Shown: positions 11,011-53,936, counted from the first letter of the stretch. The stretch is 64,000 bases of DNA from Bugula neritina (GCA_964035545.1 OZ037765.1:30751504-30815503); one strand, 5' to 3'. Notes: generated by a model not told the origin, from the sequence alone. Numbers and translations are program-made.

Positions 11011-12707
11011 ACTAGTCTTAGTGAACTGCATTAAGCGAGTTGCTTTATTAAGTAAGACTAAGATTAACTGTAGAGTGTAAAAGTTAGTTTTACTGTAAGT
11101 TAGTGAGTGCATCTATAAGTTGCTGGAAATTGCTAATAACTTTACTCTATCAATTTCAATTTGCTTTTTTATTCTCTTCAATATAAATGTAGCTACTTTG
11201 TCTTGAAGTTTTAATGGTACAAACAGATGCTAGCAGGGCACTATCAAATTGTTATTTGGCATCAACTTGTAGCTTAACAAATGCTATTATTCTAAAATTG
11301 AGTTGTTGATAACAATTATAGCTAAATACTTTATTATATGTTTTTACACTGTCAACTATAAGTATCATTATTATTTTATGTCATACGACAAGCCACACTA
11401 AAATGCAATATAATTAGGCCTATGCTTATCACAAAACTGAATATAATCAGATGACAATTGGTATTATAAATTGTAGTTGTTCATTTAACAAAGTTATACC
11501 ATATTTTCTTAAAATTTATTGATAATATAATTAATTATTTCAATATATGATAATAAATGGTTAGCAGATTTTGTAGATGGAATAAATTGAGGTTTGATTT
11601 TTATACTAAATGATATTTTTACTTTAACCCCCAAAACATTCATTATTCTTATCTAGATTTAAATGTGAGGTTTGTTTTTTTAATTTTTAAACTCTTATAT
11701 GTCACAAAGTTAACCGAAGTTCTTATTCCGTCCCCACTGTTACTCATAGTAAATGAATACTTCTTAGTAGCTGGTATAGTAGGAACACTGGTTAAGTTTA
11801 GATTACATGTAACACTTTCAGTGCGGTATAATGTCTATTCATAATGATAATCTATCAAATGAAGCTTTTCCTGATGCAAACAATTGTATTGTTAGTATTT
11901 AATTGAGATTAGCCTTGTATTATAGTTTAATGTTTAGAGATACAATTAAATGCTGGTTAGATGTGAATTCAGTTTTCTGTGGTGGCTGCTACAATTTTCC
12001 CCAAGGGTCTGCATTGGTTGTACCTTAAAAGTTGAAATTAAAATTCAAATGTATGAGGCTGGAATTATGTTGTCCGACACACAATTTTCAAGACTTGAAA
12101 TTTACGAGTTTAGATTCAGTCATTGTACCAGCTCTTTTTTATGAGTTTAGTGAATTTTTTGTATGCATAGTCAAACTTGAGCAGGACAATGTAAGTGCTA
12201 TTAATCAGCCTACTCATAATCTGTGAATTGTTTTACAAGTGACTTATTGATTTAGAATGTACACACTTGTTGAAACTTCCAAGGAACATGCTGTGTAAAC
12301 TCATATGTTTCTGAATAGACTACCAACTTATCATCACGGCCATCTTTTCATTAATAAACACGCCTATAGAAACTGTGGAATAGTTTTCTTAGCCAGCTGC
12401 TTGCGTAATCTGTCTTCTGTTGCAAGAAACATGGTGTCGCACCAATACAGTCTGCGATTGAGATCCTTTTAGCATAATACTTTAATCAATAGTTGATCCC
12501 GTGGTGATTTGATAATTGTTCTTGGTATTTTAGTGTGTCTATTCTATTTACACGACAATATAAATAATATATATTTTTATTTGCCATTCACGGTAGTAGC
12601 TATTCCATGTAAAGAACCAGCGTGATACAAGTCAGTGTATACTTGGTAGGTCTATGTTTAGCTTAAGATGTTGAAATAATGTGTTTCTATATATAGGTGT
12701 ATATGTA

Positions 12708-15700
12708 ATGACGGAAGCTGTGCAATCAGTGCCATCTGGTGGGTATGAAGAATTTGTTATGACAGGAGATTTAATATTACAAGTCAAATCATCTCCACCT
12801 TCACCAAAGAGAAAGTCACGCTTGTCAGGCGACAGCAATTTCTCCGAATCAGACGCTGATGCCGGTACAGTAAAGCCGACAGCAGTAAATGGCGGTCTAA
12901 CCACTCCTGACACCCATGTTGACACTTCTACTGACACTCATGCCAACAGTAACTCATATGACCCTATGGTGACTTCAGACTTTGATACTCAGCATACCAA
13001 CAATCACAATGGTAACTCCTTTACCAATCTGGAATGTTCCGACATTACTACTAATACAGACATCAGTGCAGACGACGATGCCAGCTCTGTTGCATCTGAT
13101 GACTCATTTCCGGAAGAATTCATTCAAACTAACTTTACTGAAGGTGGAGTAGTTTACGGGACAGTGAGAAAAGTGGATGAGCCATCAGCTCATCGGTTAG
13201 CCAAGAGACTGTTTAATTTGGACGGGTTTAAGAGGTCTGATGTGTCGTACCATCTAACCAGGGAGTGAGTATTAGCAACTTAGTCTACGTTGATTGCTAT
13301 TTTTAGCCACTGGTTTACAAGGTGCCATTGTTTAAGTATAGTATTAGCGGGTAGATTAGGCTTTATTCCGTACTACCACTGTGCTATCTTATCTCTTCTT
13401 AATTCTGATTCATTTTACTATGAATTGTTATTCTTAATTGAGATAAATTTATCTTTAGTCTACATCAGTCATGTGTTTCAAAACTATTGTTTTGCCTTCT
13501 ATTAAATGTCATTCGTTCTTCATTATTTAACATTCATACAAGTTCCCCTAGTATTTAGGAAAAGCTTTACTCTATGCCTTCATGAAGTATGATGATGTGA
13601 ATGTATCTACAGTTTAGTATGCATGTACCTATACACAATAACCCGCTTCACTATGTACATCTACCTAAATTAGCTACAGTGTACATCTAGTGTTTCAATA
13701 AAAGTATTTTTAGCTTACTCTCTCTTCATTTAGCAACCAATTCTCCAGAAAAGTTAATGAAGAATATCTCAAGCACTTTGACTTTGTTGATAAGAATCTG
13801 GTGCAGGCGATGAGGCAATTCTTTGACCATTTCACACTGGTGGGAGAGACTCAAGAGAGAGAGCGAGTGTTGAATCACTTTACTAATAGATACCTCGAGT
13901 GCAATCCCTCCGCACTGAATGTGGACTATAACTCTATTGGTCAGTTTAACAGCAGCAGCTCTGTTAATGTGTCATCTTGCTGACTTAGTCATAGTTTGAG
14001 TCATAGTGATAACAGTACTAGTAGTACTAATAATACTATTACCAATAGTGCTAGTAGCAGCAGCAGTAGTAGTACTTTTACTAGTAGTACTAGTACTATT
14101 ACTAGTTGCAGCAGTATTAGTACTACTACTAGCACTAGTACTACTACTAGTGCTAGTAGTAATACTAACGCTGCTGCAACTGGTAATAGTACTAGTATTA
14201 CTGGTAATAGTACTAGTAATATTAGTAATAGTACTAGTTGTAGTACTAGTACTGAATTTGCTCTTAGTCTATAATAAAACACACTTTGCTAATCGCTGTG
14301 TCAATTCTTAACCCAACAAAGTGAAGAGCTACTAAGCTCATGTAGAAAGCTATAAAATGTATAATACTAATAACATTCACCAGTAAATCAGGAAGTCGGG
14401 TTACATGACTCAGCCACTGTGAGTCTTTGTGTGCATCACTATGTCCATTATGTAACATGGCAACCCCTTGTGTAATAGACTGCTATAGACAGCTAGATGT
14501 AGAGATTGCTGTGGTTATGAAATAATCTATGATCTCTTAGCACAAGATTTAAGGGGAAACAGGATCTACTAGGCTAGTTCTGCATACAATTATTCAAGTG
14601 AACTTGAAATTATATTATTTATTTATCATTAGAGCCAGGTTTGAATTCACTAATGCCTATATATCCATTACAGATGCTTGTCATACTTTGACCTGTGCAA
14701 TTATGTTACTAAACACAGATCTACATGGCCAGGTAGGTCACAGTATTCTCTCACTATCTCACTCAGTCAATCACTGCAAGTGATTGATAAAACTATCCTT
14801 TTATCTAATTTGTTTGCACATATATATTAATCTAAAGCACCGGCCCTAATACCACCTTGTTGATGCGTACAGTTCTATATGCAGTGAAATTTATTAACTG
14901 TAAACAATGATAAGCAATTTCTATCAGTTGCTATCATATTTTTGGTTGCATAAACATTAAAAGTGACGCTCAAATGAATAAAGTTGATGCTGTGGTGTAA
15001 CTGTTTTGAAAGAATTCGATGGAAATGTTGTTTTTATGTTTAGGCAAGTTTTAATTCTGCATTTTATTACAAAATATGCAATCAGCGTGACTTGGTGGTT
15101 TGTAAGACTTTAGTTTCACAGCCAATGGCATTGGCCAATCACGTGATGGCTTTCATCATTGAAAGAAGCTGGTGATTGGCTACACAATCTGTGTGTGGTG
15201 AAACTGCATCCAGTGAAGCTACTGCCTGCTTCACACTTTTATATACAATGGGAAACAAATTTATATGCTGGGAATTGTTTAACTGAAACCAACTGGCCTA
15301 TTGGCTGTGGTTTTGGCCTATTAGCTATGATGTTACTCATTCTAGCATGCCATTGGTTCAAGCAACTCAATCTCTCGCATGTTATTGCATTGCATTTCCT
15401 GTTTGAAGAATGTGGGTCGACGGATGACCTTGAACGATTTCATCGAGAATTTAACCGGTTTAAATGGAGATGATGATTTCTCCAAAGACATGCTCAAGTT
15501 GTACTACAATTCAATAAAGCACCAGGAGCTGACGTGGGCAAGGTGGGTCAGCACACTTGTATATGGGATGTCACTTTTAGAGCGGGTCTTTATCTTGTCT
15601 CAGACTAGAGTTTTAACATCCAAATCATTCTATAGTGGCAGATGCAGTTGCAATGTCAAAGAAGATTTATTACGCAGTGTTTATTAGTTTAGTGAGCTAG

Positions 15701-37761: not shown

Positions 37762-40700
37762 ATGCCATCTCTAAATAAACCGACTGTACGAATCTCCCGC
37801 ACGTTTTCCTGTAAGAATTGTTATAAAAAGTGGGAGTCATATTTAGTAGTGCCTCTTCTAGATACTTCCTCTGATGTCACCATGGAAACAGCTTTAAAAC
37901 GAACTCTATACGCTAGCAATGTGAGTACAGCACCCCTGTGAATACCTTCCCAGTCATTACCTTGCCAATCACTAGTGAAGTTGTAGCTATCACTGAGCTG
38001 ATCAATGCCACTCATGATGTCACAATAGCCAACCAATCAGTAACTAGCCTCAAATATACATCAACTAACTTCTCACTCGAAGAGTTGAAAGTCTAACAAG
38101 TTTATGCAGAAGTATGACTCATACTAGTTATTTTTGGCAAAAGCTTTCTTACTTGTCACAGTAAACAACAAACTGCCGTTATGGTACTAATTTAGTTTAT
38201 TCTGTTCATGTTATGTTATTCTATAGGCTAACGCTGTAGCATCAATTTCCTTTTCAACAGCTTACATTAGCCAAGATACGGAAGTTGAATTTTATGGTAC
38301 TTTTAGTTCTGATATTTGAAACTCGACAGCTATGTAATATATAATTAGATCTACTAATAGATAGTTGCATAAACCTGCAGTACCAGTTTCCAAGAAACTC
38401 ACGTCTCCTAGCTCTTTCATTGGAGACAAGATAAAAATATCGTTTTGCGTAAAAGTGCTATAATAGCTCTTATGCAAGCTTAAAAGCATGAATTTCCTCC
38501 CCCCCCCCCCCATGTTACGTCAAGCTAGAAATCAATTACCTGCCTGATTTAAAGTGCAAAGAGCTTAAAACTAAAATTGAATTTCTCATTTAACATAAAA
38601 AGTGTTAGTAGACAATGATAACTGATACTTTTACTAATTGATAGGCAATGTGTGATTACTGCTAATCAGTCAAGTTTGGTATTTTCTACTGCCAGCTCAC
38701 ATAACACGTTTAAAGATATAACTACTATGCACTAGATTGTTATAACTATTATATGTTTACGTACTCTAAATTTCAACTATAGTTTTAAAAGTAAAAAACT
38801 GCAACATTTATGGACCACTTAGTTTCATGGAAATCAAGGAGCGGCTTTTTTATTGCATAATACTGAATATTTTAAAAACTAGAAAATTGAATCGTAACAA
38901 TGAGTCAGCACTTCTTTATACTAAATTCTAAAATACATAATATTGCTTTGTGCAAACTAATAGTTGAATGACATGTTTGGTTATTTATTAGCATTTTTCT
39001 GGCTGTAAGACCAAGCGAAAGTCACAGCTTTTATTATAACACTTGTAATATACTATTGAACTTCTTTTGTGTTAATCTTTTTTCTTTTACATAAGAACAA
39101 AAATTTGCTACCATATTATGGGTGTAAGTGAATGTTTATGTTTTTTTTATCAAATTCCGTAACACTTAAATACTGCTATCTGGATACAATTATTTAATAT
39201 TTGATTTTCTATGCTTGTAGAGCGTTTTGTTCAATGGAAACATCACAATGGAGGATTTAAATGTAGATGCGCACTCTCTAGCCTTGCTGGTCTCACCTGC
39301 GCAGGTAAACAGCCAGTAGATGTATTAATAGGAAGTTCGTTTCATCCCACTTAGACGATTTTTTATTTTGGTACAATATATATAGTAATATACATACATA
39401 ACTTTTGCATTTACTGCTAAACATGAAATAAGCTACCAAGCCAGCTATATTTGCTTTAACTCAATACTAATTTAGCTACAGTTTATTTTATTCGGAATAA
39501 CAGAATAAACTGCACAAATGCATTACATGGTATATCACATACTGCTATATTACAACTTTACTGCGCCATTTTTGTCTAGAATCTCTTTAAATATACCACT
39601 TAATAAACATATTTGATAGTTTTTTCTTATTATATTTTGTCTATCTTTTACCTTTAAGTTTAGGGTTTGTGCAAGATGGCTTCTTATAGAAGCATTGTTA
39701 CTGTAAGTGGCTTGCTGATGGCTTCTTTGCTTTCTATTATGTGCTAAATAATAGCATAAAAATAATACATTTATCACACTAAAATCTATAAATATCGTCT
39801 AAGTGGGAAGCGTCCATGTGGGAATCATCTAAGTGGGATGACACCAGGAAGTTTAAAGCTCTAGCTGTCATTGTACGTTCTTCCACTATCTTTATTTATC
39901 CTTATAGCTATTGGGAGTCTCAGAATGATCGTATGATTAGCTAAATGCAGGATTTTTACTCGTATTACCAGTTTTTTGCATTGAGTAACATAACACAACG
40001 GTGCCGGTCACTCCATTATCCAGAAATATAGCTTTAAGCTGTATTATATCAACCATATTTTTCATGCTTAATAAATGTGGGTAAATAAAGGTCAAGGTTA
40101 AGTACTATTAGTTGTCATAATCTTATAGCAATTATAGGTATTACCCCTGTATAAAACTTGCATTCCAATAATCTCACTTCTTACAAAAAATAAAATTGCG
40201 CCATAAGTTTTATGTTGCCTCAGCCATTACAAAATCAAAGTTTGTATGTGGAAACAAGCCATGGTTATAGCTATTTGTATTAACTTTGGCACTATGTTAT
40301 AGAATAGCTTAATATTAAAGAGTTGCTACTTTTTATTTTTGTGATTGTTGTACCAATCTGTGCAATGCCACTTTGCCCCATATTTTTATAGAATGAAAGC
40401 TTGAAAGCTTTTTTCAGCTTTTATAGCTTTTAAAAGGTGTTATGCTATGCTGAAGGTAATGTAAATATAATACATTTGTCATATTGATTGACTTTCCTGG
40501 GTAAAACTGCAGTCCTTTGGCCTGCCACAAGCCAATTATTTACAAGTTGTCAGAAACTTGAGGGACAACAAAAATTTCAGCTCAACTAAAATTAGACTGG
40601 CCGTAGCTAACTTTAATTTATGTACTAAAATCATTCAACAAAAACTACTAAAAACAATTGTAGCGTGAATAATACCTACTGAATATTGGTACTATATTCT

Positions 40701-43700
40701 ATTGGTTTAACATGCAGGATAACTTTTGTAAACTATATAATGATAAATTCGGTTCAATGCGAAAGCAATATAAGTATATAACCAGACCGACTATCTAATT
40801 AAAGCCTTTGCTCAAAAGAACTTAGAATAAGTTGATTTTAGACGGACTTCTTCAGAAATCTGCCGTCTGTCAAAACCTGTAAACCTGTCAAAACATGAAA
40901 AAATTTCATAGCATCCACACAAGTTGAGACTGATTGAGCTGCATCTTTTACCTTCTTAAAGAGATCTTTAAAATACCATCTCAATAATATATTGATCCTC
41001 AGATAAGGTGCCCATCATATTTTATTGAACAAGAAATTAGATATTAAAGAATTCTTAAAAAGCTCATGCTATTAGTTGACATATAAACATAAATAGGTCA
41101 AAGAGGAGAGGAGAAATCATCGTTGCTATTAGCACTGATCAATGAGTGAGAAAGGCTGTTTTAGTATATAATGTCCAAATAAACCGCTGCATGCAACATG
41201 ATAGTGCAGATTTCTCTGATAGGGCATCATTATGTATATGATGAATTGATGCGAGTTTCGAAACTTACTGGTTCTTATGTCCTCCAACTGTATAATTATA
41301 CTCTAGTTAGAGTGATTTGAAATCATGCATATGAAGTGCATTGATGGAGAAATGTCAAGTGTCTAAATCTAATTTTAGACCTTCAGTTTGAGGTTCGGGT
41401 TGAAAATCTTTAAAGAACATTTTTGCATTTTTCTCATCTACAACACAGGCTTTTCTGAATCTCTCCTTCACTGTACTTACTTGGAGGTCAGGTAAAGGAG
41501 CTGTTGATAATGCACAGCAACTAAAATTAAACTGTAACTCTTTTTATTGCCTAAAGTGCAAGACCTGGTGGTAGGTTATCGCTGATGACATTACAATTTA
41601 TGTACCTACCATACTGTACTTACTGCACTTACTCCATTTACTGTACTTGCATACTGTACTCACTGTATTCACTGTGCTTACAGGGAGAGATTGAGATATC
41701 GTGTAGGTCAGTGCTTGCTGGCAGGCTATGCCCTGACTGTGTGTATCCTTCCACTCAGGAAGAGCCGAAAAAACCAGCAAGGTGCAGACAATCCCAGTAT
41801 ACTATATTCATCCACTCTCTACAATCAGGTGGGCCTTGTCACATATTCCGTCTGCACATTGCAACATCAAATTATGGAATGGATGCTGTAAGGATAAATT
41901 TGCGATTGCGATTTCATTATAAGCAGCTATTTCCAAACCTCCATTTGTAAATCGGAAGATTGGAAACGTAGCATACCTTACGCTGCTTTCTTTTTTTGTT
42001 GGAGTTATGCCCCTTGAACATGCTGATTTCGAAAACCTCATGTTAGGAGCCTAAACTTACATCAGCCCTCGATCCCTGTTGCCAACCTGCTAGAATTACT
42101 GTTTCTTTCAATTATAATGCTTTTTGTGAGAAAAAAGAACACAAATTTGATTGTCACCTGTTAACCCTGTAGCGTTCAGTTTACCCAGTGCCCACCCCCC
42201 CTGGTGTAATGGTAGCACACTTGCTTGCAAGCCAGAGGACTCTGTTCGATTCTCAGTGGGGGCAAAATTATTTTTCAAACCCTTCAGTCATTGAAGTCAT
42301 CCATCAATTGGTTAGTCTATTTTAAATTCACACAGCACCAAAACAACTTAAAAACTTGCGAATACTAAAAGGTTATCAATGTCGCTCATAAAGACAGCCA
42401 ATCAGGGAGTAGCTAAACTGGATAAAACGTAGCATAGCTAAATACAGCTTAAACTTTGAGGAAGGGATCAAATATTGCTATTTACTATAAAGAGCTTTCA
42501 CTTTTTCAATAACGCATTAGCTTACGAGTATAAACCTTGGCTGTGTACAAAACAGGTTTTAATACGTTTAGCTTGGTAAAACTTAGGCTATGCGGTTGTA
42601 GCTTTTAGCTGAACACCTTAGCTAAGTTGTTGAACAAGGAAACAGTAGTTCTTTGATCAAGGTTACCTCATTCTTTGCATAATTGCTACCAAATGAATAA
42701 CACCAAACTTGTAGCTGTAACCATCTGATACTATTAAATTCAGGAATTTTTTAGTAAATTTGAACCTCAAATTCCGGTTACTTGTATTTGAGGCAAATTT
42801 CAATAAGACTTAAGCCAAAAAACTGCAAATGGTAATGTGAAAACTGCGCCTCTATTATTACAGTAGCTGTCAGTGAGATGCATAGAGGGTTACTCTTCAA
42901 TGTGTTGTAATTTTGTTTACAGTAACCATGATTTCTACAGGTGCAAGTTCTTTCAACATGTTTGATAGTTAGTATATAATATTACAGTTAGTATATAATA
43001 TTACAGTTAGTATACTATATTACAGTTAGTATACTATATTACAGTTAGTATATAATATTATAGTTAAATATATTATATTACAGTTAGTATATAATATTAT
43101 AGTTAGTATATAATATTACAGTTAGTATATTGTATTACAGTTAGTATATAATATTATAGTTGTTATATAATTTTATAGCTAGTATATAATATTACAGATT
43201 TAAGCCACTGCCCTGATAACCAAACTCTCCCCTGTTTAAATACAAAGACACCTGTCAGTCCACTGAGTGAAAACCCACCAGAGTTACACAAACTCGCTGA
43301 CTCCACGCTGTCAGGAGATACTACCAACTTAGATGGATACGAAACTTCACCCTCGTTCCTGTCACACTCAGTACACACCAGCATGCAACAAACTCTTCCT
43401 TCTTCCCACAACCCACAGTCGGCACAAAACCTGAAATCATCAAACCACAAAGTTTCATCAGAGAATCTAGAAAGTTCCCAGCGGTTAGTTTCACCAGAAG
43501 GGCAAGATCCAACACCTATTTCTTCCATTTATCAGCAAACATCTATATTACCACAGACATCTATATTACCACAGACATCTATATTACCACAGACATCTGC
43601 AATACCACAGACATCTATATTGCCACAGACATCTATATTACCACAGGCATCTATATTACCACCCCATGCAAACCTTCAACAGGACACTGTTTTACCATTC

Positions 43701-46700
43701 CAACTGACTACTTCTGCTAGTGCGCCTGTCCCTGCCCCGAGGTCAATTAACAACAGCAGATCCTCTGAAACCTCTTCCGAAACATCTCGGGTAGAGAGTT
43801 CCTCTGAGAGTCAGCACTATGAGGTCTACGGCAGCGAAGTTATTGATGATGACTACCTGCTACCATCACTACAGGCCCGTATACCTCCCCTGCCACCTAA
43901 AACATGGAACCCTCTCAATAATCTGTTTAGCTACATTTATATGCAACAGGTAGGTACAAGTCAGCACTACAAGTTTGAGAAGAGCAGGTTTTGACGTTGA
44001 ATCAGATATCTAGAATCAAATCATTACTGAGTGTTATTTGTTGATGAATTGCTCAGTCAAACTGTCTGTGGTGTGCTTTTATCAATTGTGTCATTGGATC
44101 TAACAATAGCACATAATAGAAGTGTTTTAATCCAGATTTCTCCTATTTCTATTTGTAGCTTTGATGTAATATTGGCATGCAGTGTTGCATTAACCCTTTA
44201 GATTGCTTGCTATAAATGATAAAATATCTTATTTTAGAAATTAGTCTTAGCAACTTTATGCTCATAGACATGCCCTTGCTTTTCTTAGGTTTCCAGTTAT
44301 TCATTTAGCCGGGATAGGGGTAATACGCACATGATGGGTGTTAAAAGTCAATTGCTAGTTGTCAGTATAAATAATATACAACATAAATATTTTTATTGCC
44401 TATCAATGTTGAGAAAATAGCCAATGAAGCTCTCTGCATGACTAATGCAACATTATTCGTTAATATGCTCTTCATTTACAAATAGAAAATTAAACATATC
44501 CTATTCATGATTTATATAGAAGTTAATGTAGTCAAATCCATTAATGGCAGTGATTGTTGGTTTTGTTTGTATTGGCACCGATTTTCCATGCTTTATTTGA
44601 TGCTTTGTTTTTACCATGGAAAATTCCTCTATATATCTGGAAAATTCCAATTCATATCGAGGCAACTCTTTTACCCCTTTCCCCTGCTATTCAAAAATAA
44701 AAGAAGCCAATGAGGATGATGTTTGATTTAGAGTGTTTAATTAACTCTTCTCCCTTTCATTTTAAAAAGGCTGGCAATGTAAAGTATGAAAATAGTTGTG
44801 AAGGGAAGATAACTCTTGCTGTTCATATAATGCACACATTCCTTATTAGCAGTATGGAAAGCCAGTGATATAGAAATGGCTGATGGTTTACATTTTACAA
44901 TAATGAAGTTCAGCTATTGGGTAAAAAGCATGTCACACTGAAATTAGACAACTCCCAATTTCATGGGAATACTTTAATGCGCACACGCCTGTATTAAACT
45001 TGCAAATATACATGCTTGGAATGTGAATACTTTTGTGGACAATTTTTTCATTTCTATAATAAAAATGAAAGTTTCATTGAGCATTTAATGAAATAGCTAC
45101 TAGATCAGTTGTTTTAGTATAATAAACAGCAGCTTATTGCATCTTTCAGAAATGCGTGATTGCTTATTGTGAAACTACCAAAATTTTATGTTCTTGCACT
45201 CAATATATCTGCACAATTTTGCTGGTCGCTTTCCTAGAAATTAAATAGTATTCTATATATTGTTATTTGTATTTAAAACTTGTAATTCAGGTGCTATAAT
45301 TCTCATAGTGCTAGAATGCTCAAAATATCGTATAATTAATTAAAATTTGTTGCGGTTAATAATGGGAGAACAATAATGGATTTACAACTACTGATTGACT
45401 TTCAACGTGGTATTAAAAGAAAGTTTCAACTAAAATAATCAACTATCTAATTTCAGTATTTAATAGTATCTGTTATCAAAGCATTTATTTTATGTACACT
45501 ATAAGTGACATCATTCAAAGCAATATGGAGGACGTGATTTCTCTTAGAATGAACCGTATACTTACATAATTGCTTACATGAATATACATTCACTCTACAA
45601 GTTGTCTAGTAACTAGAACAGTAGTTTCCAACCTTTTTCATATAATTCCCCCTTTCATAAAGGTTTACTATAACTTCCCCCCTTTTTGAAAATTTCAGTT
45701 TATAGGTACTTAAAAAAAGACTGACATAACATATGATACCAATCTATGTTTTTCTATAATATTTGGTTATAATATAATAGCTGCAATACCATTATGCATG
45801 TATAAAATACAGAGCAGTTAATTATTAATAATATGATGGTTGCGGCTGATGCTTTTGTGCCATCTTGCTGACTCTATTTTTACAGGTAACATCTCAGGTA
45901 ACTTTGCAGGTTAAGGCAGTTTCTCTTTACATTCTTAATAGTATTGGTGAGAATCTTATCTCGCAATGAAAGTTAGTGCTAAATGACACCAAAATTTCTT
46001 AATGTTTTGTGATAGATTTTGCTTGTTGAAACCCATGGATCTGGTCAATTGGTAAAGATTTCATTGCATAATTAGTAACCATCTCAATCAATAAGCTACA
46101 GGAAGCCTTTAAAATCCTCCTGCGACTCATCTGGGATGGGTCACGGTAGAATGGGAGTCATATTTCAAGTTAAGAAACTTTTGCTTTTATGAAAGTAGCT
46201 CAAAGAGTTAATAGGAGTTCAAAGAAATGCTCAGAAATGTCTTGCAAGAAATTTTGGAACATGTTATGTTCCTAATAATTCATTCAGTATGAGGAAAGAC
46301 ACCATGTTTTTGATATGCGTGTCTGCCACAAATCATTCTATAAGCAACTCCGAGTTGGGGGTGACTGAGTGCAATAGTTTAAGATTCTCGAGTTTAAAGT
46401 TGGGGGTATCAATTGGAACTAGGAACCCCCAACTACAAACTTGAGAATCTTAAACTACAGTAGCCCAGGTATCAGTTAGGGTAGACACATGCATGTAGAA
46501 GTAAACTTAGATTGTAAAGTCTAATATTGATAATGATAGATGAACTAAGATGGAGGTGTTTATAGAGATGTAGATATACATGTAACTTGTAAAATAAAGC
46601 AAAAACTCAAAAATCGTTGACAGACTGCATAAAATTTTTAAAATTATAATGACCCCCTAAACTGTCAAAACTCCCTCCAGGGGGTAATACCCCCTAGGTC

Positions 46701-47622
46701 GGAAACCACTAAACTAGAAACATGTTGAGCATTATGTCATCTTTTCTGCTATGACACACTTTGCTTATTTGAATTATGTCCCTCCACAGATTTTCTCTTT
46801 CTGATTTTAGATAAAAGACACTTTGGCTAGATTTGGTGAGAGAGGTCTCTACGCTCTAGTACTAACTCCGCCGTTAGACAAACAAAGTTGTGGCCAAATG
46901 GAAACACCTTACGTAATAGTATGGTATGTTCCTTATAACAAATACATCGCAATAGCTATATTATAATGGTATATTTGTGCTGAAACAAAAAATTACTCTG
47001 TTTTGCAAATCATTTGGGAGTTATCCACACATTTTATGCTTGCTGGATAGGAGTTGTCTGCACTACATATAACCTGGTTTCAAAAGCAGCTAAATTTAAT
47101 GCCTTGGTATACAAAGTTTTCACTGGTGGCTTATGTAGAAATTTACCCGTCTGGCAGGTCTTTTACAAGTATAGGGGGCAGCTGGCTTAGAGGTTTTATT
47201 GCCTAATACAGTGCTAATGCCCTTAAAAATACTCAGTTAGTATAATAATCTCAACGCCCAGTATTTGGAAGACTTACTTTATAAACTTCAATAAATTTTG
47301 CAAAAACTGAGAAAGATAAATTTTATTGATATAGTTTTTTCTCGAATATATATTTTGTAGCTTCACCATTTATATGCTGTTATGTTATTTGGAAATTTAA
47401 ATATTTCAGTGCTAATTTAATTTTTGTAGCCCACAACTTAAGAATGGATATAAACTGGTCTTCAGTTTCCAGACTACAGGCGGTACGAGAAAGTACTTTA
47501 TTCATCGAGACCAGACATTTAGCGGTCTCAAAGGCTTGCTGTTGTATTATGGGAAACATGCCACGAAATGTAATGTCTATCTTCGTACGCAGCTTAAGCT
47601 ACGGGATATGAACAGGCATTGA
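37762..47622 (+). CDS. Uncharacterised 481-aa putative signalling adaptor: 3CxxC-like zinc finger, disordered Tyr/Pro-motif linker and degenerate SH2-like domain
   Basis: Exons 37762-37920, 39221-39304, 41684-41828, 43198-43949, 46811-46923, 47430-47622; all GT-AG, phases 0,0,1,0,2 close (1446 nt, no internal stop). N-terminus RTFSCKNCYKKWESYLVV...GEIEISCRSVLAGRLCPDC; C-terminus IKDTLARFGERGLYALVL...PYVIVC...KYFIHRDQTFSGLKGLLLYYGKH...VYLRTQL. Confidence 0.8.
39336..39845. mobile_element. Non-autonomous DNA element with inverted ends and 15-bp periodic subterminal repeats
   Basis: The left TCATCCCACTTAGACGAT (~39342) is the reverse complement of the right-end units ATCGTCTAAGTGGGA / AGCGTCCATGTGGGA / ATCATCTAAGTGGGATGA (39794-39841). 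Confidence 0.6.
42167..42285 (+). mobile_element. tRNA-derived SINE-like element, copy 1
   Basis: TGGTGTAATGG (A box), TTGCAAGCC, GTTCGATTC (B box), GGGGGCAAAATTATTTTTC. T and anticodon stems are mismatched. The same flank GTAG.GTT.AGTTTACCCAGTG and tail recur at 56756. Confidence 0.7.
42969..43197 (+). repeat. 19-bp minisatellite made of 12 copies of the splice acceptor of the 752-nt exon
   Basis: Unit TTAGTATATAATATTACAG; the last unit supplies the AG at 43196-43197. Confidence 0.95.
43536..43661 (+). repeat. Coding 18-bp minisatellite, (QTSILP)x7
   Basis: Unit CAGACATCTATATTACCA, in frame within the adaptor exon. Confidence 0.95.
45619..46711 (-). mobile_element. Internally deleted hAT transposon (Charlie/Buster type) with an 8-bp TSD
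   Basis: TIRs CAGTAGTTTCCAACCT and AGGTCGGAAACCACTA. The TSD AACTAGAA is identical at 45611-45618 and 46712-46719 (nnnTAnnn). Minus-strand relic KNVKRNCLNLQSYLRCYL...MAQKHQPQPSY (~45830-45940) resembles the hAT C-terminal dimerisation region. Confidence 0.88.
46336..46462. mobile_element. Foldback MITE, copy 2, nested inside the hAT element (right arm truncated)
   Basis: TTCTATAAGCAACTCCGAGTTGGGGGTGACTGAGTGCAATAGTTTAAGATTCTCGAGTTT...AAACTTGAGAATCTTAAACTA. Confidence 0.75.
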
Positions 47623-47656
47623 GCTGCAGAACAGTAAAGCGTCATACTAGTATGCC

Positions 47657-47659
<3 letters not shown>

Positions 47660-47738
<79 letters not shown>
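47660..47738. repeat. (TA)n microsatellite, ~39 units, 38 nt after the stop codon
   Basis: Pure TA run. Confidence 0.98.
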
Positions 47739-47742
<4 letters not shown>

Positions 47743-48367
47743 ATTATACGTTAATATTATACAGCTTTATTATGTAGCTTAACAGATAATGTATATTTGT
47801 ATATTGTAGCAAATGCTCTCCTATTATAAAGTACAGCCTGGCATATTAAAAGCTAAAGCTGCATTTCTTTATTTAATTTATTGCTTATTTAGACAGCTGC
47901 TTTCTGTAGTTTTCTTTTTAATTTTATGCTTTTTCGAGCAATCAATAGATAATATCTATTATTGCAAATTTTATTTATTTCCCAAAACTAACTTTCAATT
48001 TATATATGAACTGTAGCATAACATTTGAGGAGTTATGTCGGCTTGTATTCTACGTAAAATGAATAAACTGTACAGAAAAAAATTTAATTATTGTTTATCA
48101 TATATTTAATCAGTCATTATATATTCATAATTTTTTTTCTATAAACAACTGTCAGGTTTTGACAGATAACACTCTCCTTGCATTGTTTATATTGTTTAAA
48201 TTGCTTCAATGGAATTTTGAATTATTATAAATTGCGATTTAATAAATAAAACAATGTTAGAAAAGTGTATCCTGTATACTTTGTTGATGAGATAGATCTG
48301 TTGGCTATAGTCACCGTAATCCTGTAATAGGATACAAAACAAATTACTTTACTCGCACTCTACAATG

Positions 48368-52116: not shown

Positions 52117-53936
52117 ATGACAAGTCGGAATGTAACGGATTTAATTGGATCAGCTAAGAGCATGCCTGGAGTAGAGAGCGCCGAGTTGTACTCTGACACG
52201 GCCGCACAAGTATGCAGACGATCGTTGGAATTACTCTTTCAAGGTAAACAGAGCAAACTAATTTCTAATAAGTGATTTTCATGTCTTTATTAATTTTTCA
52301 TAATAAAGAATGAAGTTTTGATAAGCAAAAACATAAAATATCGAGCAATTTATGGTTTTTTATGATTAATAGTGTTGAGAGAAAAGTGTAATAAAAAGCA
52401 ATGTTTCGTCAAAAGTTAAATTATTTTCCTCTGGCAACTAACTTCCCTAGGGAGGCTCGGTTAATTCTGGTGTTGGTAGAGAAATACAAAATGTAAAAAA
52501 TATTATATAATCTATACAGAATTATATAAGACTGTTTAGTGTTCCATAGTTTAAAATTTGAAATCCAAGTTTGTGCACCTGGGATCTGTGCATTATTGAC
52601 TATTGAAAAAATTGATAATTAAAAAATTTATTTTAATAGTTAGGACATTGCAAATTGATTCTCACAGTTATAGTAATAATCAACTACAACATTGCACAAT
52701 AAAAAAATTTGAGACATTCTATGCTTGTCAATGCAAAAAGTAGTAAATAGCTTTATATTATGAATGCCAGTCAATAAATGAACTTCATTAATAGAATACA
52801 TTATTTTGCAGGTGCTTTGACTTCAGTGAATAGACACAAGGAGCAGACTATATTAGACATTGGCTGTGGTACTGGTGAGGCCACCAACTGCCTCATGCAG
52901 TACCTACCCTTCACCAAGTCTATCACTGCCATAGATAGAAGTATGGAGTTTATTGACTACGCGAGGGAAGTAAACGCATCACCCAGGATAACCTATGAGT
53001 GCCTGAATGCTGAGAAAGACTGGCCTAAAGAGTGGCGTGAGAAATTTACTATGGTAGGTAGCTTAATTTGTTCTGCCCATAATTTTAAAATATATTTTAT
53101 TAAGCCAAGTCATTTACCAACTTTTTATTAAAAACTCAAATCTGATCCAGTGCTGATTTTAAATATGGTATTTACTTGTTGTAATGCTAAATTATCCTTT
53201 AAAATTTTGCAGCCATTTTACAACTATTACAGAATATTGAAATTAAAAATGTTTGGACAGCAAATTTCACAGATTGACAATAAGTTTCAGTATTTTGTGT
53301 GTTTGGTTTAGAGCCTTGCAATGCATGTAGACCGAGTTCTAAGCAACTAAAGGCAAATTAATAGAAAGCAAGCTATAATTATGCTGTTACAAAAAAGATG
53401 TATAAACACACTTTAGATCCTAACAGCTATATATTTGTAATGTTTAGGTGTATTCCAACTACGTATTCCACTGGATTAAGGATCATAACTTATTGCTAAG
53501 ACAAATCAACAGAGCAATGAAAGTCAACAGTGACCTTTTAGTACAATTCTTTCATTCGGCTCAACCAGCAAATAACGAAATGATGGCAGCTAAAAGGGCT
53601 GCCGAAGACTGCGGCATCGTCAATGAAATGCAAGCGGCCATATTGGCTGTGAAGAAAATGGTGCCTATATGGAAGGACGCTAGCTCTTACAGCCGTGTAA
53701 TTTCTTCACTCGGATTCGTAGTGAAAACATGCCGAATTGAAAATAGACAGTACAGGTGTAAATCTAAATTTGAAAGAGCAGGGATGACAGTTACTGTTAG
53801 TCCTTTTATGAATCACGTGCCACAGGATAAGAAGATGTTGTTTGCCACGAAGTATGTGAACTATCTAGCCGACCCTTTTACTATCTATCACAAGGCAGTT
53901 GTGGTGCACGCAATAAAGATCCGCAGCATTGACTGA
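52117..53936 (+). CDS. Class I SAM-dependent methyltransferase, juvenile hormone acid O-methyltransferase (JHAMT)-like, 285 aa
   Basis: Exons 52117-52243, 52812-53053, 53448-53936 (858 nt, phases close). Motifs AELYS, ILDIGCGTG (motif I), ITAIDRSMEFIDYARE and KFTMVYSNYVFHWIKD, as in the JHAMT/Tam-like clade. Confidence 0.85.

Follow-up and report, generated by a model that had tools for sequence, protein, structure and literature searches.

A candidate Bugula neritina gene that may join a ZAR1/RTP-type zinc ribbon to a degenerate SH2-like fold

RTP4 is an interferon-induced protein of the 3CxxC type. In adaptors of the SLP-76/BLNK and SH3BP2 type, a C-terminal SH2 domain is preceded by an extended disordered stretch that bears PxxP sites and acidic tyrosine motifs, and the human proteins RIN2, TYK2 and SH2D5 contain atypical SH2 domains in which the beta-B5 arginine is replaced. 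The zinc-finger domain of RTP4, with CxxC pairs at residues 57, 95 and 157, is said to support nucleic-acid binding, and a variable, disordered region comes after it (PMC12431671). We analysed a 64-kb stretch of the bryozoan Bugula neritina (contig C1:30751504-30815503, G+C content ~0.33; hereafter the window, from whose first base all positions are counted) in which positions 37762-47622 of the plus strand may encode a zinc ribbon, a disordered linker and an SH2-like fold in one chain. The most economical reading is a single lineage-restricted gene of five exons and 453 amino acids (478 with a further, doubtful exon), to which we assign, on the sequence evidence set out below, a probability of about one half. 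The genome searched was the assembly of 216,009,554 bases, whose nine largest contigs are chromosome-sized; the published genome of this species comprises 216.00 Mb in 9 pseudomolecules (PMC11480708). Database, profile and structure searches were run exon by exon.

The nearest comparison for the N-terminal part is with ZAR1/ZAR1L and with small ZAR1-like genes found elsewhere in this genome (C9:1.28 Mb and C8:10.5 Mb; L009, L010, L012 and L013). Shared with them are the F-x-C-x-x-C-x3-W-E-S start, a G-E-[IFV]-x-[IV] strand ahead of the second CxxC, and cysteines at +37 and about +45 counted from that pair. In contrast to them, the candidate gene has a loop between the first and second knuckles that is 14 residues longer, an asparagine where the third pair should have its second cysteine, no cysteine after W-E-S-x4, introns at other positions, a Pfam score under the cut-off, and ~340 extra residues with an SH2-like end. 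RTP4 belongs to the Pfam family that was matched here (PF13695), but its CxxC pairs are spaced by 38 and 62 residues, whereas the spacings in the candidate protein, which is known from sequence alone, are 52 and 37, its third pair is incomplete and it has no C-terminal transmembrane helix.

For the remainder of the protein, the likeness to SLP-76, BLNK and SH3BP2 is one of layout only, as the long middle exon has no detected sequence homology; those proteins begin with a SAM or PH domain whereas a zinc ribbon would stand here, and the SH2-like part lacks the FLVR arginine. Loss of the canonical arginine is common to RIN2, TYK2, SH2D5 and the candidate, which seems to lack the beta-D histidine as well. 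Among solved structures the N-terminal SH2 domain of PLC-gamma is the best match of the last exon (35 residues, E = 0.06), while the N-terminal half of the domain could not be aligned by profile. The initial annotation of this locus had stated that no described protein is known to join these modules, and none was found in the literature searched. If real, the gene combines known domains in a new way and has so far been found just in this genome.

Exon chain and coding signal

The chain consists of exons E1, E2, E3, E5 and E6, all on the plus strand. E1 (37762-37920) has 53 codons, starts at an ATG with A at -3, contains the first CxxC knuckle followed by W-E-S, and ends in phase 0 at the donor AAT/GTGAGT. 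E2 (41684-41828; 145 nt) is entered in phase 0 after cttacag/G and left in phase 1 at CAG/GTGGGC; it carries GEIEIS...LCPDC, i.e. the second CxxC, together with further cysteines and histidines. The two motifs quoted in the initial annotation were recovered at the places given there, RTFSCKNCYKKWESYLVV in the ATG-led frame from 37762 and GEIEIS...LCPDC in frame around 41684. E3 (43198-43949; 752 nt, phase 1 to phase 0) lies between the acceptor attacag/AT, where the split codon GAT yields Asp, and the donor CAG/GTAGGT. It is a stop-free frame of 271 codons in DNA of 33–37% G+C that stays open for 68 codons 5' of its first ATG and, if coding, can therefore only be an internal exon with phase-1 entry. 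E5 (46811-46923; 113 nt, phase 0 to phase 2; IKDTLARFGERGLYALVLTPP...PYVIV) is bounded by tgattttag/A and TG/GTATGT. Its phase 0 is forced because the AG of the acceptor belongs to an in-frame TAG, and it has no ATG ahead of its core and no usable start. E6 (47430-47622) is entered in phase 2 after tttgtag/C and comprises 63 codons (NGYKLVFSF...RKYFIHRDQTFSGLKGLLLYYGKH) and the TGA at 47620-47622. The four junctions all use GT/AG sites with compatible phases and give a predicted protein of 453 amino acids.

The locus had been described earlier as a six-exon gene for 481 amino acids. That count was not reproduced, but five supported exons with canonical sites do run to the TGA. The 28-codon fourth exon of that model was absent among 64 phase-0 candidate exons, and the only phase-compatible candidate between E3 and E5 that is at all SH2-like is E4 (44704-44778, plus strand; 25 codons, phase 0 to phase 0), which ends ...SSPFHFKKAGN, follows a pyrimidine tract at the first AG and has the donor AAT/GTAAAG. 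Its inclusion would lengthen the protein to 478 amino acids; without it, the splice from E3 to E5 stays in frame. The status of E4 is doubtful: it could supply the beta-A/alpha-A start of the SH2-like domain, open a separate SH2-only gene with the ATG at 44710, or not be an exon at all.

Base composition sets the five exons apart from the introns: G+C content is 0.39 in E1, 0.476 in E2, 0.45 in E3, 0.416 in E5 and 0.43 in E6 versus 0.31–0.34 in the introns, the level at which E4 (0.333) is also found. Codon usage was scored by log-likelihood ratio, with 960 codons from SH2 exons of the same genome as the training set and stop-free intronic windows of equal length as the comparison. P is the share of such windows whose score equals or exceeds that of the exon; owing to the small training set the P values are rough. 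They were 0.07 for E1, 0.005 for E2 (0.046 for its +1 frame), 0.017 for E3, 0.035 for E5 and < 0.01 for E6, and E4 gave no coding signal (P = 0.55).

Zinc ribbon, linker and SH2-like fold

The N-terminal ~114 residues are predicted to form a zinc ribbon of the ZAR1/RTP type, a prediction that is partly supported. E1 matches PF13695 (Zn_ribbon_3CxxC) over profile positions 3–26 (E = 0.014, 16.4 bits), and its first CxxC with the W-x-S that follows (FSCKNCYKKWES, 37804-37839) aligns with FKCPSCHKRWES in an exon of the in-genome ZAR1-like gene L010 (pairwise BLASTP, E = 6e-5; E = 0.004 in an 11-kb tblastn). The pattern [FY]xCxxCx(2-3)W has two copies in the six frames of the window versus 0.23 expected, and both are on the plus strand within this gene. 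E1 matched no solved structure in the PDB. The second CxxC (LCPDC, in E2) comes 52 residues after the first pair. A lone CxxC is expected by chance several times in a span of this intron size; E2 is supported by its phase and by the spacing of the cysteines downstream.

Counted from the second CxxC, cysteines occur at 0, 3, 33, 36 and 42 in L009, at 0, 3, 37, 40 and 46 in L010, and at 0, 3, (18), 37 and 45 in the candidate gene, which also has histidines at 28 and 36. The cysteine at +18 is unlikely to be a zinc ligand because its codon (41783-41785) is polymorphic (Cys/Ser, T to A at 41783 in sequencing run X1). The 250 residues of E3 contain just two cysteines, both within its opening 12 residues (SHCPDNQTLPC). 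The third CxxC is only partly present: at +37 the sequence reads H-C-P-D-N, so that the first cysteine is kept and the second (+40) is Asn, and the last cysteine follows at +45. Since the two cysteines of E3 are spaced as in L010, the zinc domain would span the modelled E2/E3 junction, and this cysteine skeleton is the best internal evidence that E1, E2 and E3 belong together. The 3CxxC-like finger that had been proposed from the first two pairs thus gains modest support from the sub-threshold PF13695 match, the L010 alignment and the skeleton. Its described peculiarities are also borne out, as the first spacing exceeds that of RTP4 by 14 residues and the third pair is not intact.

Elsewhere in the genome, true PF13695 members are found on C3, with two RTP-like genes, and on C9 and C8, where the small ZAR1-like genes lie. 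Two further full-length 3CxxC matches lie on a small contig (C58:4991-6284) and are interrupted just by TAA and TAG codons, which suggests a non-standard code, so this contig may not be bryozoan.

After its two cysteines, E3 continues with ~238–240 cysteine-free residues rich in Ser, Thr, Pro and Gln, which include (QTSILP)x7, YEVY, DDDYLLP and PPLPPK. The hexapeptide is encoded by an 18-bp minisatellite of 6.9 copies at 43539-43662. PPLPPK presumably fits the PxLPxK consensus of Crk-SH3 ligands, and we take DYLLP to fit the pYxxP preference of the Crk and Abl SH2 domains. The comparison with a phosphotyrosine-adaptor tail made in the initial annotation therefore stands as far as the tyrosine and PxxP motifs go, but these are short motifs in an orphan, polymorphic and disordered exon. 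A word search with the E3 frame, covering proteins of 149–474 amino acids only, gave no relative. The 18 matches returned for E3 by HMMER all came from the QTSILP repeat, aligned to unrelated XXXLPE/IPQ repeats. A second minisatellite, of 19 bp (AGTTAGTATATAATATTAC, 12 copies), occupies 42967-43197 and abuts the E3 acceptor; with ...TTACAG at every junction between units, the array forms a row of look-alike 3' splice sites.

E6 may represent the C-terminal half of an SH2-like domain; this assignment, too, is partly supported. In a phmmer search of the PDB the six best chains were constructs of PLC-gamma-1/2, aligned on their N-terminal SH2 domain with E values of 0.06–0.4 (Src SH2, E = 1). The alignment pairs GTRKYFIHRDQTFSGLKGLLLYY with GTPKFFLTDNLVFDSLYDLITHY over 35 residues, from beta-D' to alpha-B, and the beta-D histidine seems to be absent from it. 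By the protein-language-model features of Atlas, 27 of the 30 best named clusters for E6 were PF00017, with a score of 0.92, 178–187 of 256 features shared and a recognition value of 2589, all over the bars stated by the tool. An SH2 profile built from 17 exons of this genome, which is weak in its C-terminal half, left E5 and E6 at background and E4 unsupported.

Read by eye, E5 offers alpha-A (IKDTLARF), beta-B (GLYALVL) and beta-C (PYVIV), and it is the sole match to G-x-[FYWL]-[LIVA]-[LIV] in an open frame of exon length. The domain would start either at ...KTWNPLNNLFSYIYMQQ in the tail of E3 or at ...PFHFKKAGN in E4, neither of which scores against the SH2 profile. An FLVR-type motif ([hydrophobic]3-R-x-[SDNTC]) occurs in none of the plus frames between 43950 and 47440; therefore, if this is an SH2 domain, the arginine that clamps phosphotyrosine is missing, and the word 'pseudo' used for it previously is fair. 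The claim of a C-terminal pseudo-SH2 domain is thus supported for the last exon by the PDB search and by Atlas but not by Pfam, and not for E5. On present evidence the fold is SH2-like and probably not a phosphotyrosine reader.

One gene, several genes or a decaying locus

That the exons form one mRNA, and what the protein would bind and do, we infer from the exons, phases, coding signal and domain resemblances that were observed. In the single-gene reading the product would act as a scaffold. Its zinc ribbon, with one cysteine of the third pair lost and two CxxC knuckles kept, enough for one zinc site, may hold a partner, either a protein or, if ZAR1 and RTP4 are a guide, RNA. The linker of ~240 residues, with its hexapeptide repeat, acidic tyrosine motifs (YEVY and DDDYLLP) and PxLPxK-type SH3 ligand (PPLPPK), would be tyrosine-phosphorylated and recruit SH2/SH3 adaptors of the Crk/Src type. 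The C-terminal SH2-like fold, devoid of both the FLVR arginine and the beta-D histidine, could be a protein-binding module independent of phosphotyrosine. As to the link between E3 and E5, E5 needs a phase-0 partner, the donor of E3 is near-consensus and in phase 0, and the only ATG-bearing alternative, E4, is without coding signal.

A search of sequencing runs with the whole 9.9-kb stretch retrieved one run (X1), which is DNA, and no RNA run, a type of query that hides weakly expressed genes. Over 41660-47650, X1 yielded short DNA unitigs of two haplotypes that cover introns and exons alike and contain no splice joints. The haplotypes differ in E2 by the Cys to Ser change mentioned above, and in E3 by six non-synonymous and two synonymous differences (read by hand from X1), among which are Ala to Pro, Thr to Ile, Asp to Asn, Gln to His and, in YEVY, Tyr to Ser. 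Neither haplotype has a stop or a frameshift in the exons, and all eight indels are intronic.

Several of these results weigh against the single-gene reading. The absence of an RNA run is one, and the mostly non-synonymous differences in E2 and E3 are another, as they fit a fast-evolving disordered region or weak overall constraint. The gathering cut-off of PF13695 (23 bits) was not reached, E1 was the only exon to match and E2 alone had no Pfam match; a six-frame PF13695 scan of the genome did not have the locus among its matches. By Atlas features E1 was not recognised, returning random phage clusters only. Paralogue searches of the genome itself with E1, E5 and E6 gave self matches and one match at E = 0.65 (L002), which was rejected as a paralogue since it is not a zinc finger. 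E4, E5 and E6 taken singly had no SH2 match in Pfam at E up to 10, none of the 60 matches of a six-frame PF00017 scan of the genome (cut-off 21 bits) falls in this gene, and E5 was recognised neither by Pfam, nor by the PDB search, nor by the in-genome SH2 profile. An exhaustive HMMER search with E3 against 1.84 billion representative proteins gave no true homologue, and those collections therefore lack any orthologue, and any annotated or transcript-derived protein, that contains E3. Finally, the frames themselves allow other partitions. Reading on past the E3 donor meets an in-frame stop after 14 codons, and in E4 there are an in-frame ATG and a PFHFKK stretch resembling an SH2 start, so that two genes would fit as well; the E2 frame is open for 131 codons, beyond its donor, and a small two-exon ZAR1-like gene is therefore conceivable.

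In the first of these partitions two neighbours share the strand. Gene A would run from E1 through E2 and E3 to the stop at 43992-43994 (~366 amino acids, zinc ribbon and disordered tail), and gene B from the ATG at 44710 through E4, E5 and E6 (~124 amino acids, SH2-only). Small SH2-only proteins are the format of SAP/SH2D1A. We regard this arrangement as unlikely. In its favour, besides the stop after E3, E4 has in-frame ATGs at 44710 and 44716 (the latter with a good A at -3), its end ...PFHFKKAGN is closer by eye to the WYHGK start of SH2 domains than the tail of E3 is, polyadenylation-type hexamers occur at 44489 (ATTAAA) and 44696 (AATAAA), and the E3–E5 junction is a predicted one. Against it, the exon that would open gene B has the G+C content of an intron and no codon-usage signal (P = 0.55), and the long pyrimidine tract before it is typical of the acceptor of an internal exon. 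Moreover, E3 ends in a near-consensus donor (CAG/GTAGGT) in the very phase that E4 and E5 require, and the 3' untranslated region and poly(A) site of one gene and the promoter of the other would have to share just ~715 bp. A division into three units, in which E1 and E2 make up a ZAR1-like gene ending at the stop at 41948-41950 (~141 amino acids) and a separate gene, with or without the SH2 exons, begins at the ATG at 43383 in E3, seems to us very unlikely. It would account for the E2 frame remaining open past its donor and for the 203 amino acid open frame headed by the internal ATG of E3, and several two-exon, minimal ZAR1-like genes do exist in this genome. But it leaves unexplained the 68 open codons 5' of that ATG, which reach a phase-1 acceptor fitting the E2 donor, and the presence, close to the 5' end of E3 and spaced as expected, of the two final cysteines of the ZAR1-like skeleton; nor is there an AATAAA or ATTAAA within 650 bp after the read-through stop of E2.

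A different possibility, which we consider quite unlikely, is that the frames and domain remnants are real and that the locus, being silent, very young or in decay, has no expressed functional protein or no longer has one. The want of an RNA run among those searched and of any annotated or transcript-derived protein, orthologue or paralogue in the collections searched would fit such a locus. So would the amino-acid-changing nature of the E2 difference and of 6 of the 8 in E3, with a cysteine and a motif tyrosine affected, and the disappearance of key residues from both domains (third CxxC, SH2 arginine) can be read as decay. Yet the exons are intact in both haplotypes with every indel intronic, the splice sites are canonical, and a codon-usage signal is present in five exons. 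A 271-codon frame in DNA of 33–37% G+C would be very unlikely without selection or a very recent origin, and the RNA search was made with a whole-stretch query of 9.9 kb, which conceals weakly expressed genes.

A single transcript, if real, would be the first found to encode a 3CxxC/ZAR1-type ribbon, an SH2-type module and a phosphotyrosine-adaptor tail in one chain. It would illustrate how a lineage-restricted scaffold can be assembled from an ancient finger that binds RNA and a phosphotyrosine reader that has degenerated, and it would add a natural arginine-less SH2 domain to the few known. The wider weight of this is limited, as it is a gene model seen in one genome, with no relative found and weak constraint over most of its length. 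A more specific role, in which a bryozoan-specific adaptor would wire an RNA- or receptor-binding ribbon of the ZAR1/RTP4 type to tyrosine-kinase signalling, for example as a nucleic-acid-sensing immune adaptor, is highly doubtful, and its immune-adaptor and RNA-sensing elements are pure speculation.

Other motifs, repeats and flanking frames

A second F-x-C-x-x-C-x2-W motif is present on the plus strand at 41492-41571, 113 nt upstream of E2, where QQLKLNCNSFYCLKCKTWW is followed by TAG or, alternatively, a GTAGGT donor. The stretch resembles LKLN...FECRKCKHNW of the ZAR1-like gene L012. As an alternative first-knuckle exon (E1b, 41492-41570, NSFYCLKCKTWW) it would be phase-compatible with a short E2 in the +1 frame (donor at 41782) and with E3. 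This exon was rejected: coding signal is lacking (P = 0.77), its DNA does not resemble that of E1, and the short-E2 donor that it requires is lost in the other haplotype (GT to GA at 41783). The motif may be a relic exon or a chance occurrence.

Two intronic stretches have a very high word depth in X1, ~20,800 at 42060-42259 and ~8,600 at 46260-46459 versus ~80–100 elsewhere, and are therefore high-copy repeats. Loose ends at 42060-42259 read GGGTTCGATTCCCAGTGGGG, a motif like the T-arm of tRNA that suggests a tRNA-derived short interspersed nuclear element. An ARAGORN scan of the introns, the repeat stretch included, gave no tRNA.

Downstream of the gene, a (TA)39 microsatellite (47661-47738) begins 39 nt past the stop codon, in the presumed 3' untranslated region, and the first AATAAA/ATTAAA signals after it are at 47845 and 48062; the contigs of X1 do not reach 47460-47650. 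Further on, two open frames of 117 and 162 amino acids (52778-53936, plus strand) contain the motif ILDIGCGTGE, typical of S-adenosylmethionine-dependent methyltransferases, and are probably exons of the next downstream gene. On the other side, an acidic and Ser-rich open frame of 195 amino acids on the plus strand at 12681-13268, which ends ...AHRLAKRLFNLDGFKRSDVSYHL, probably belongs, as an exon, to a gene upstream.

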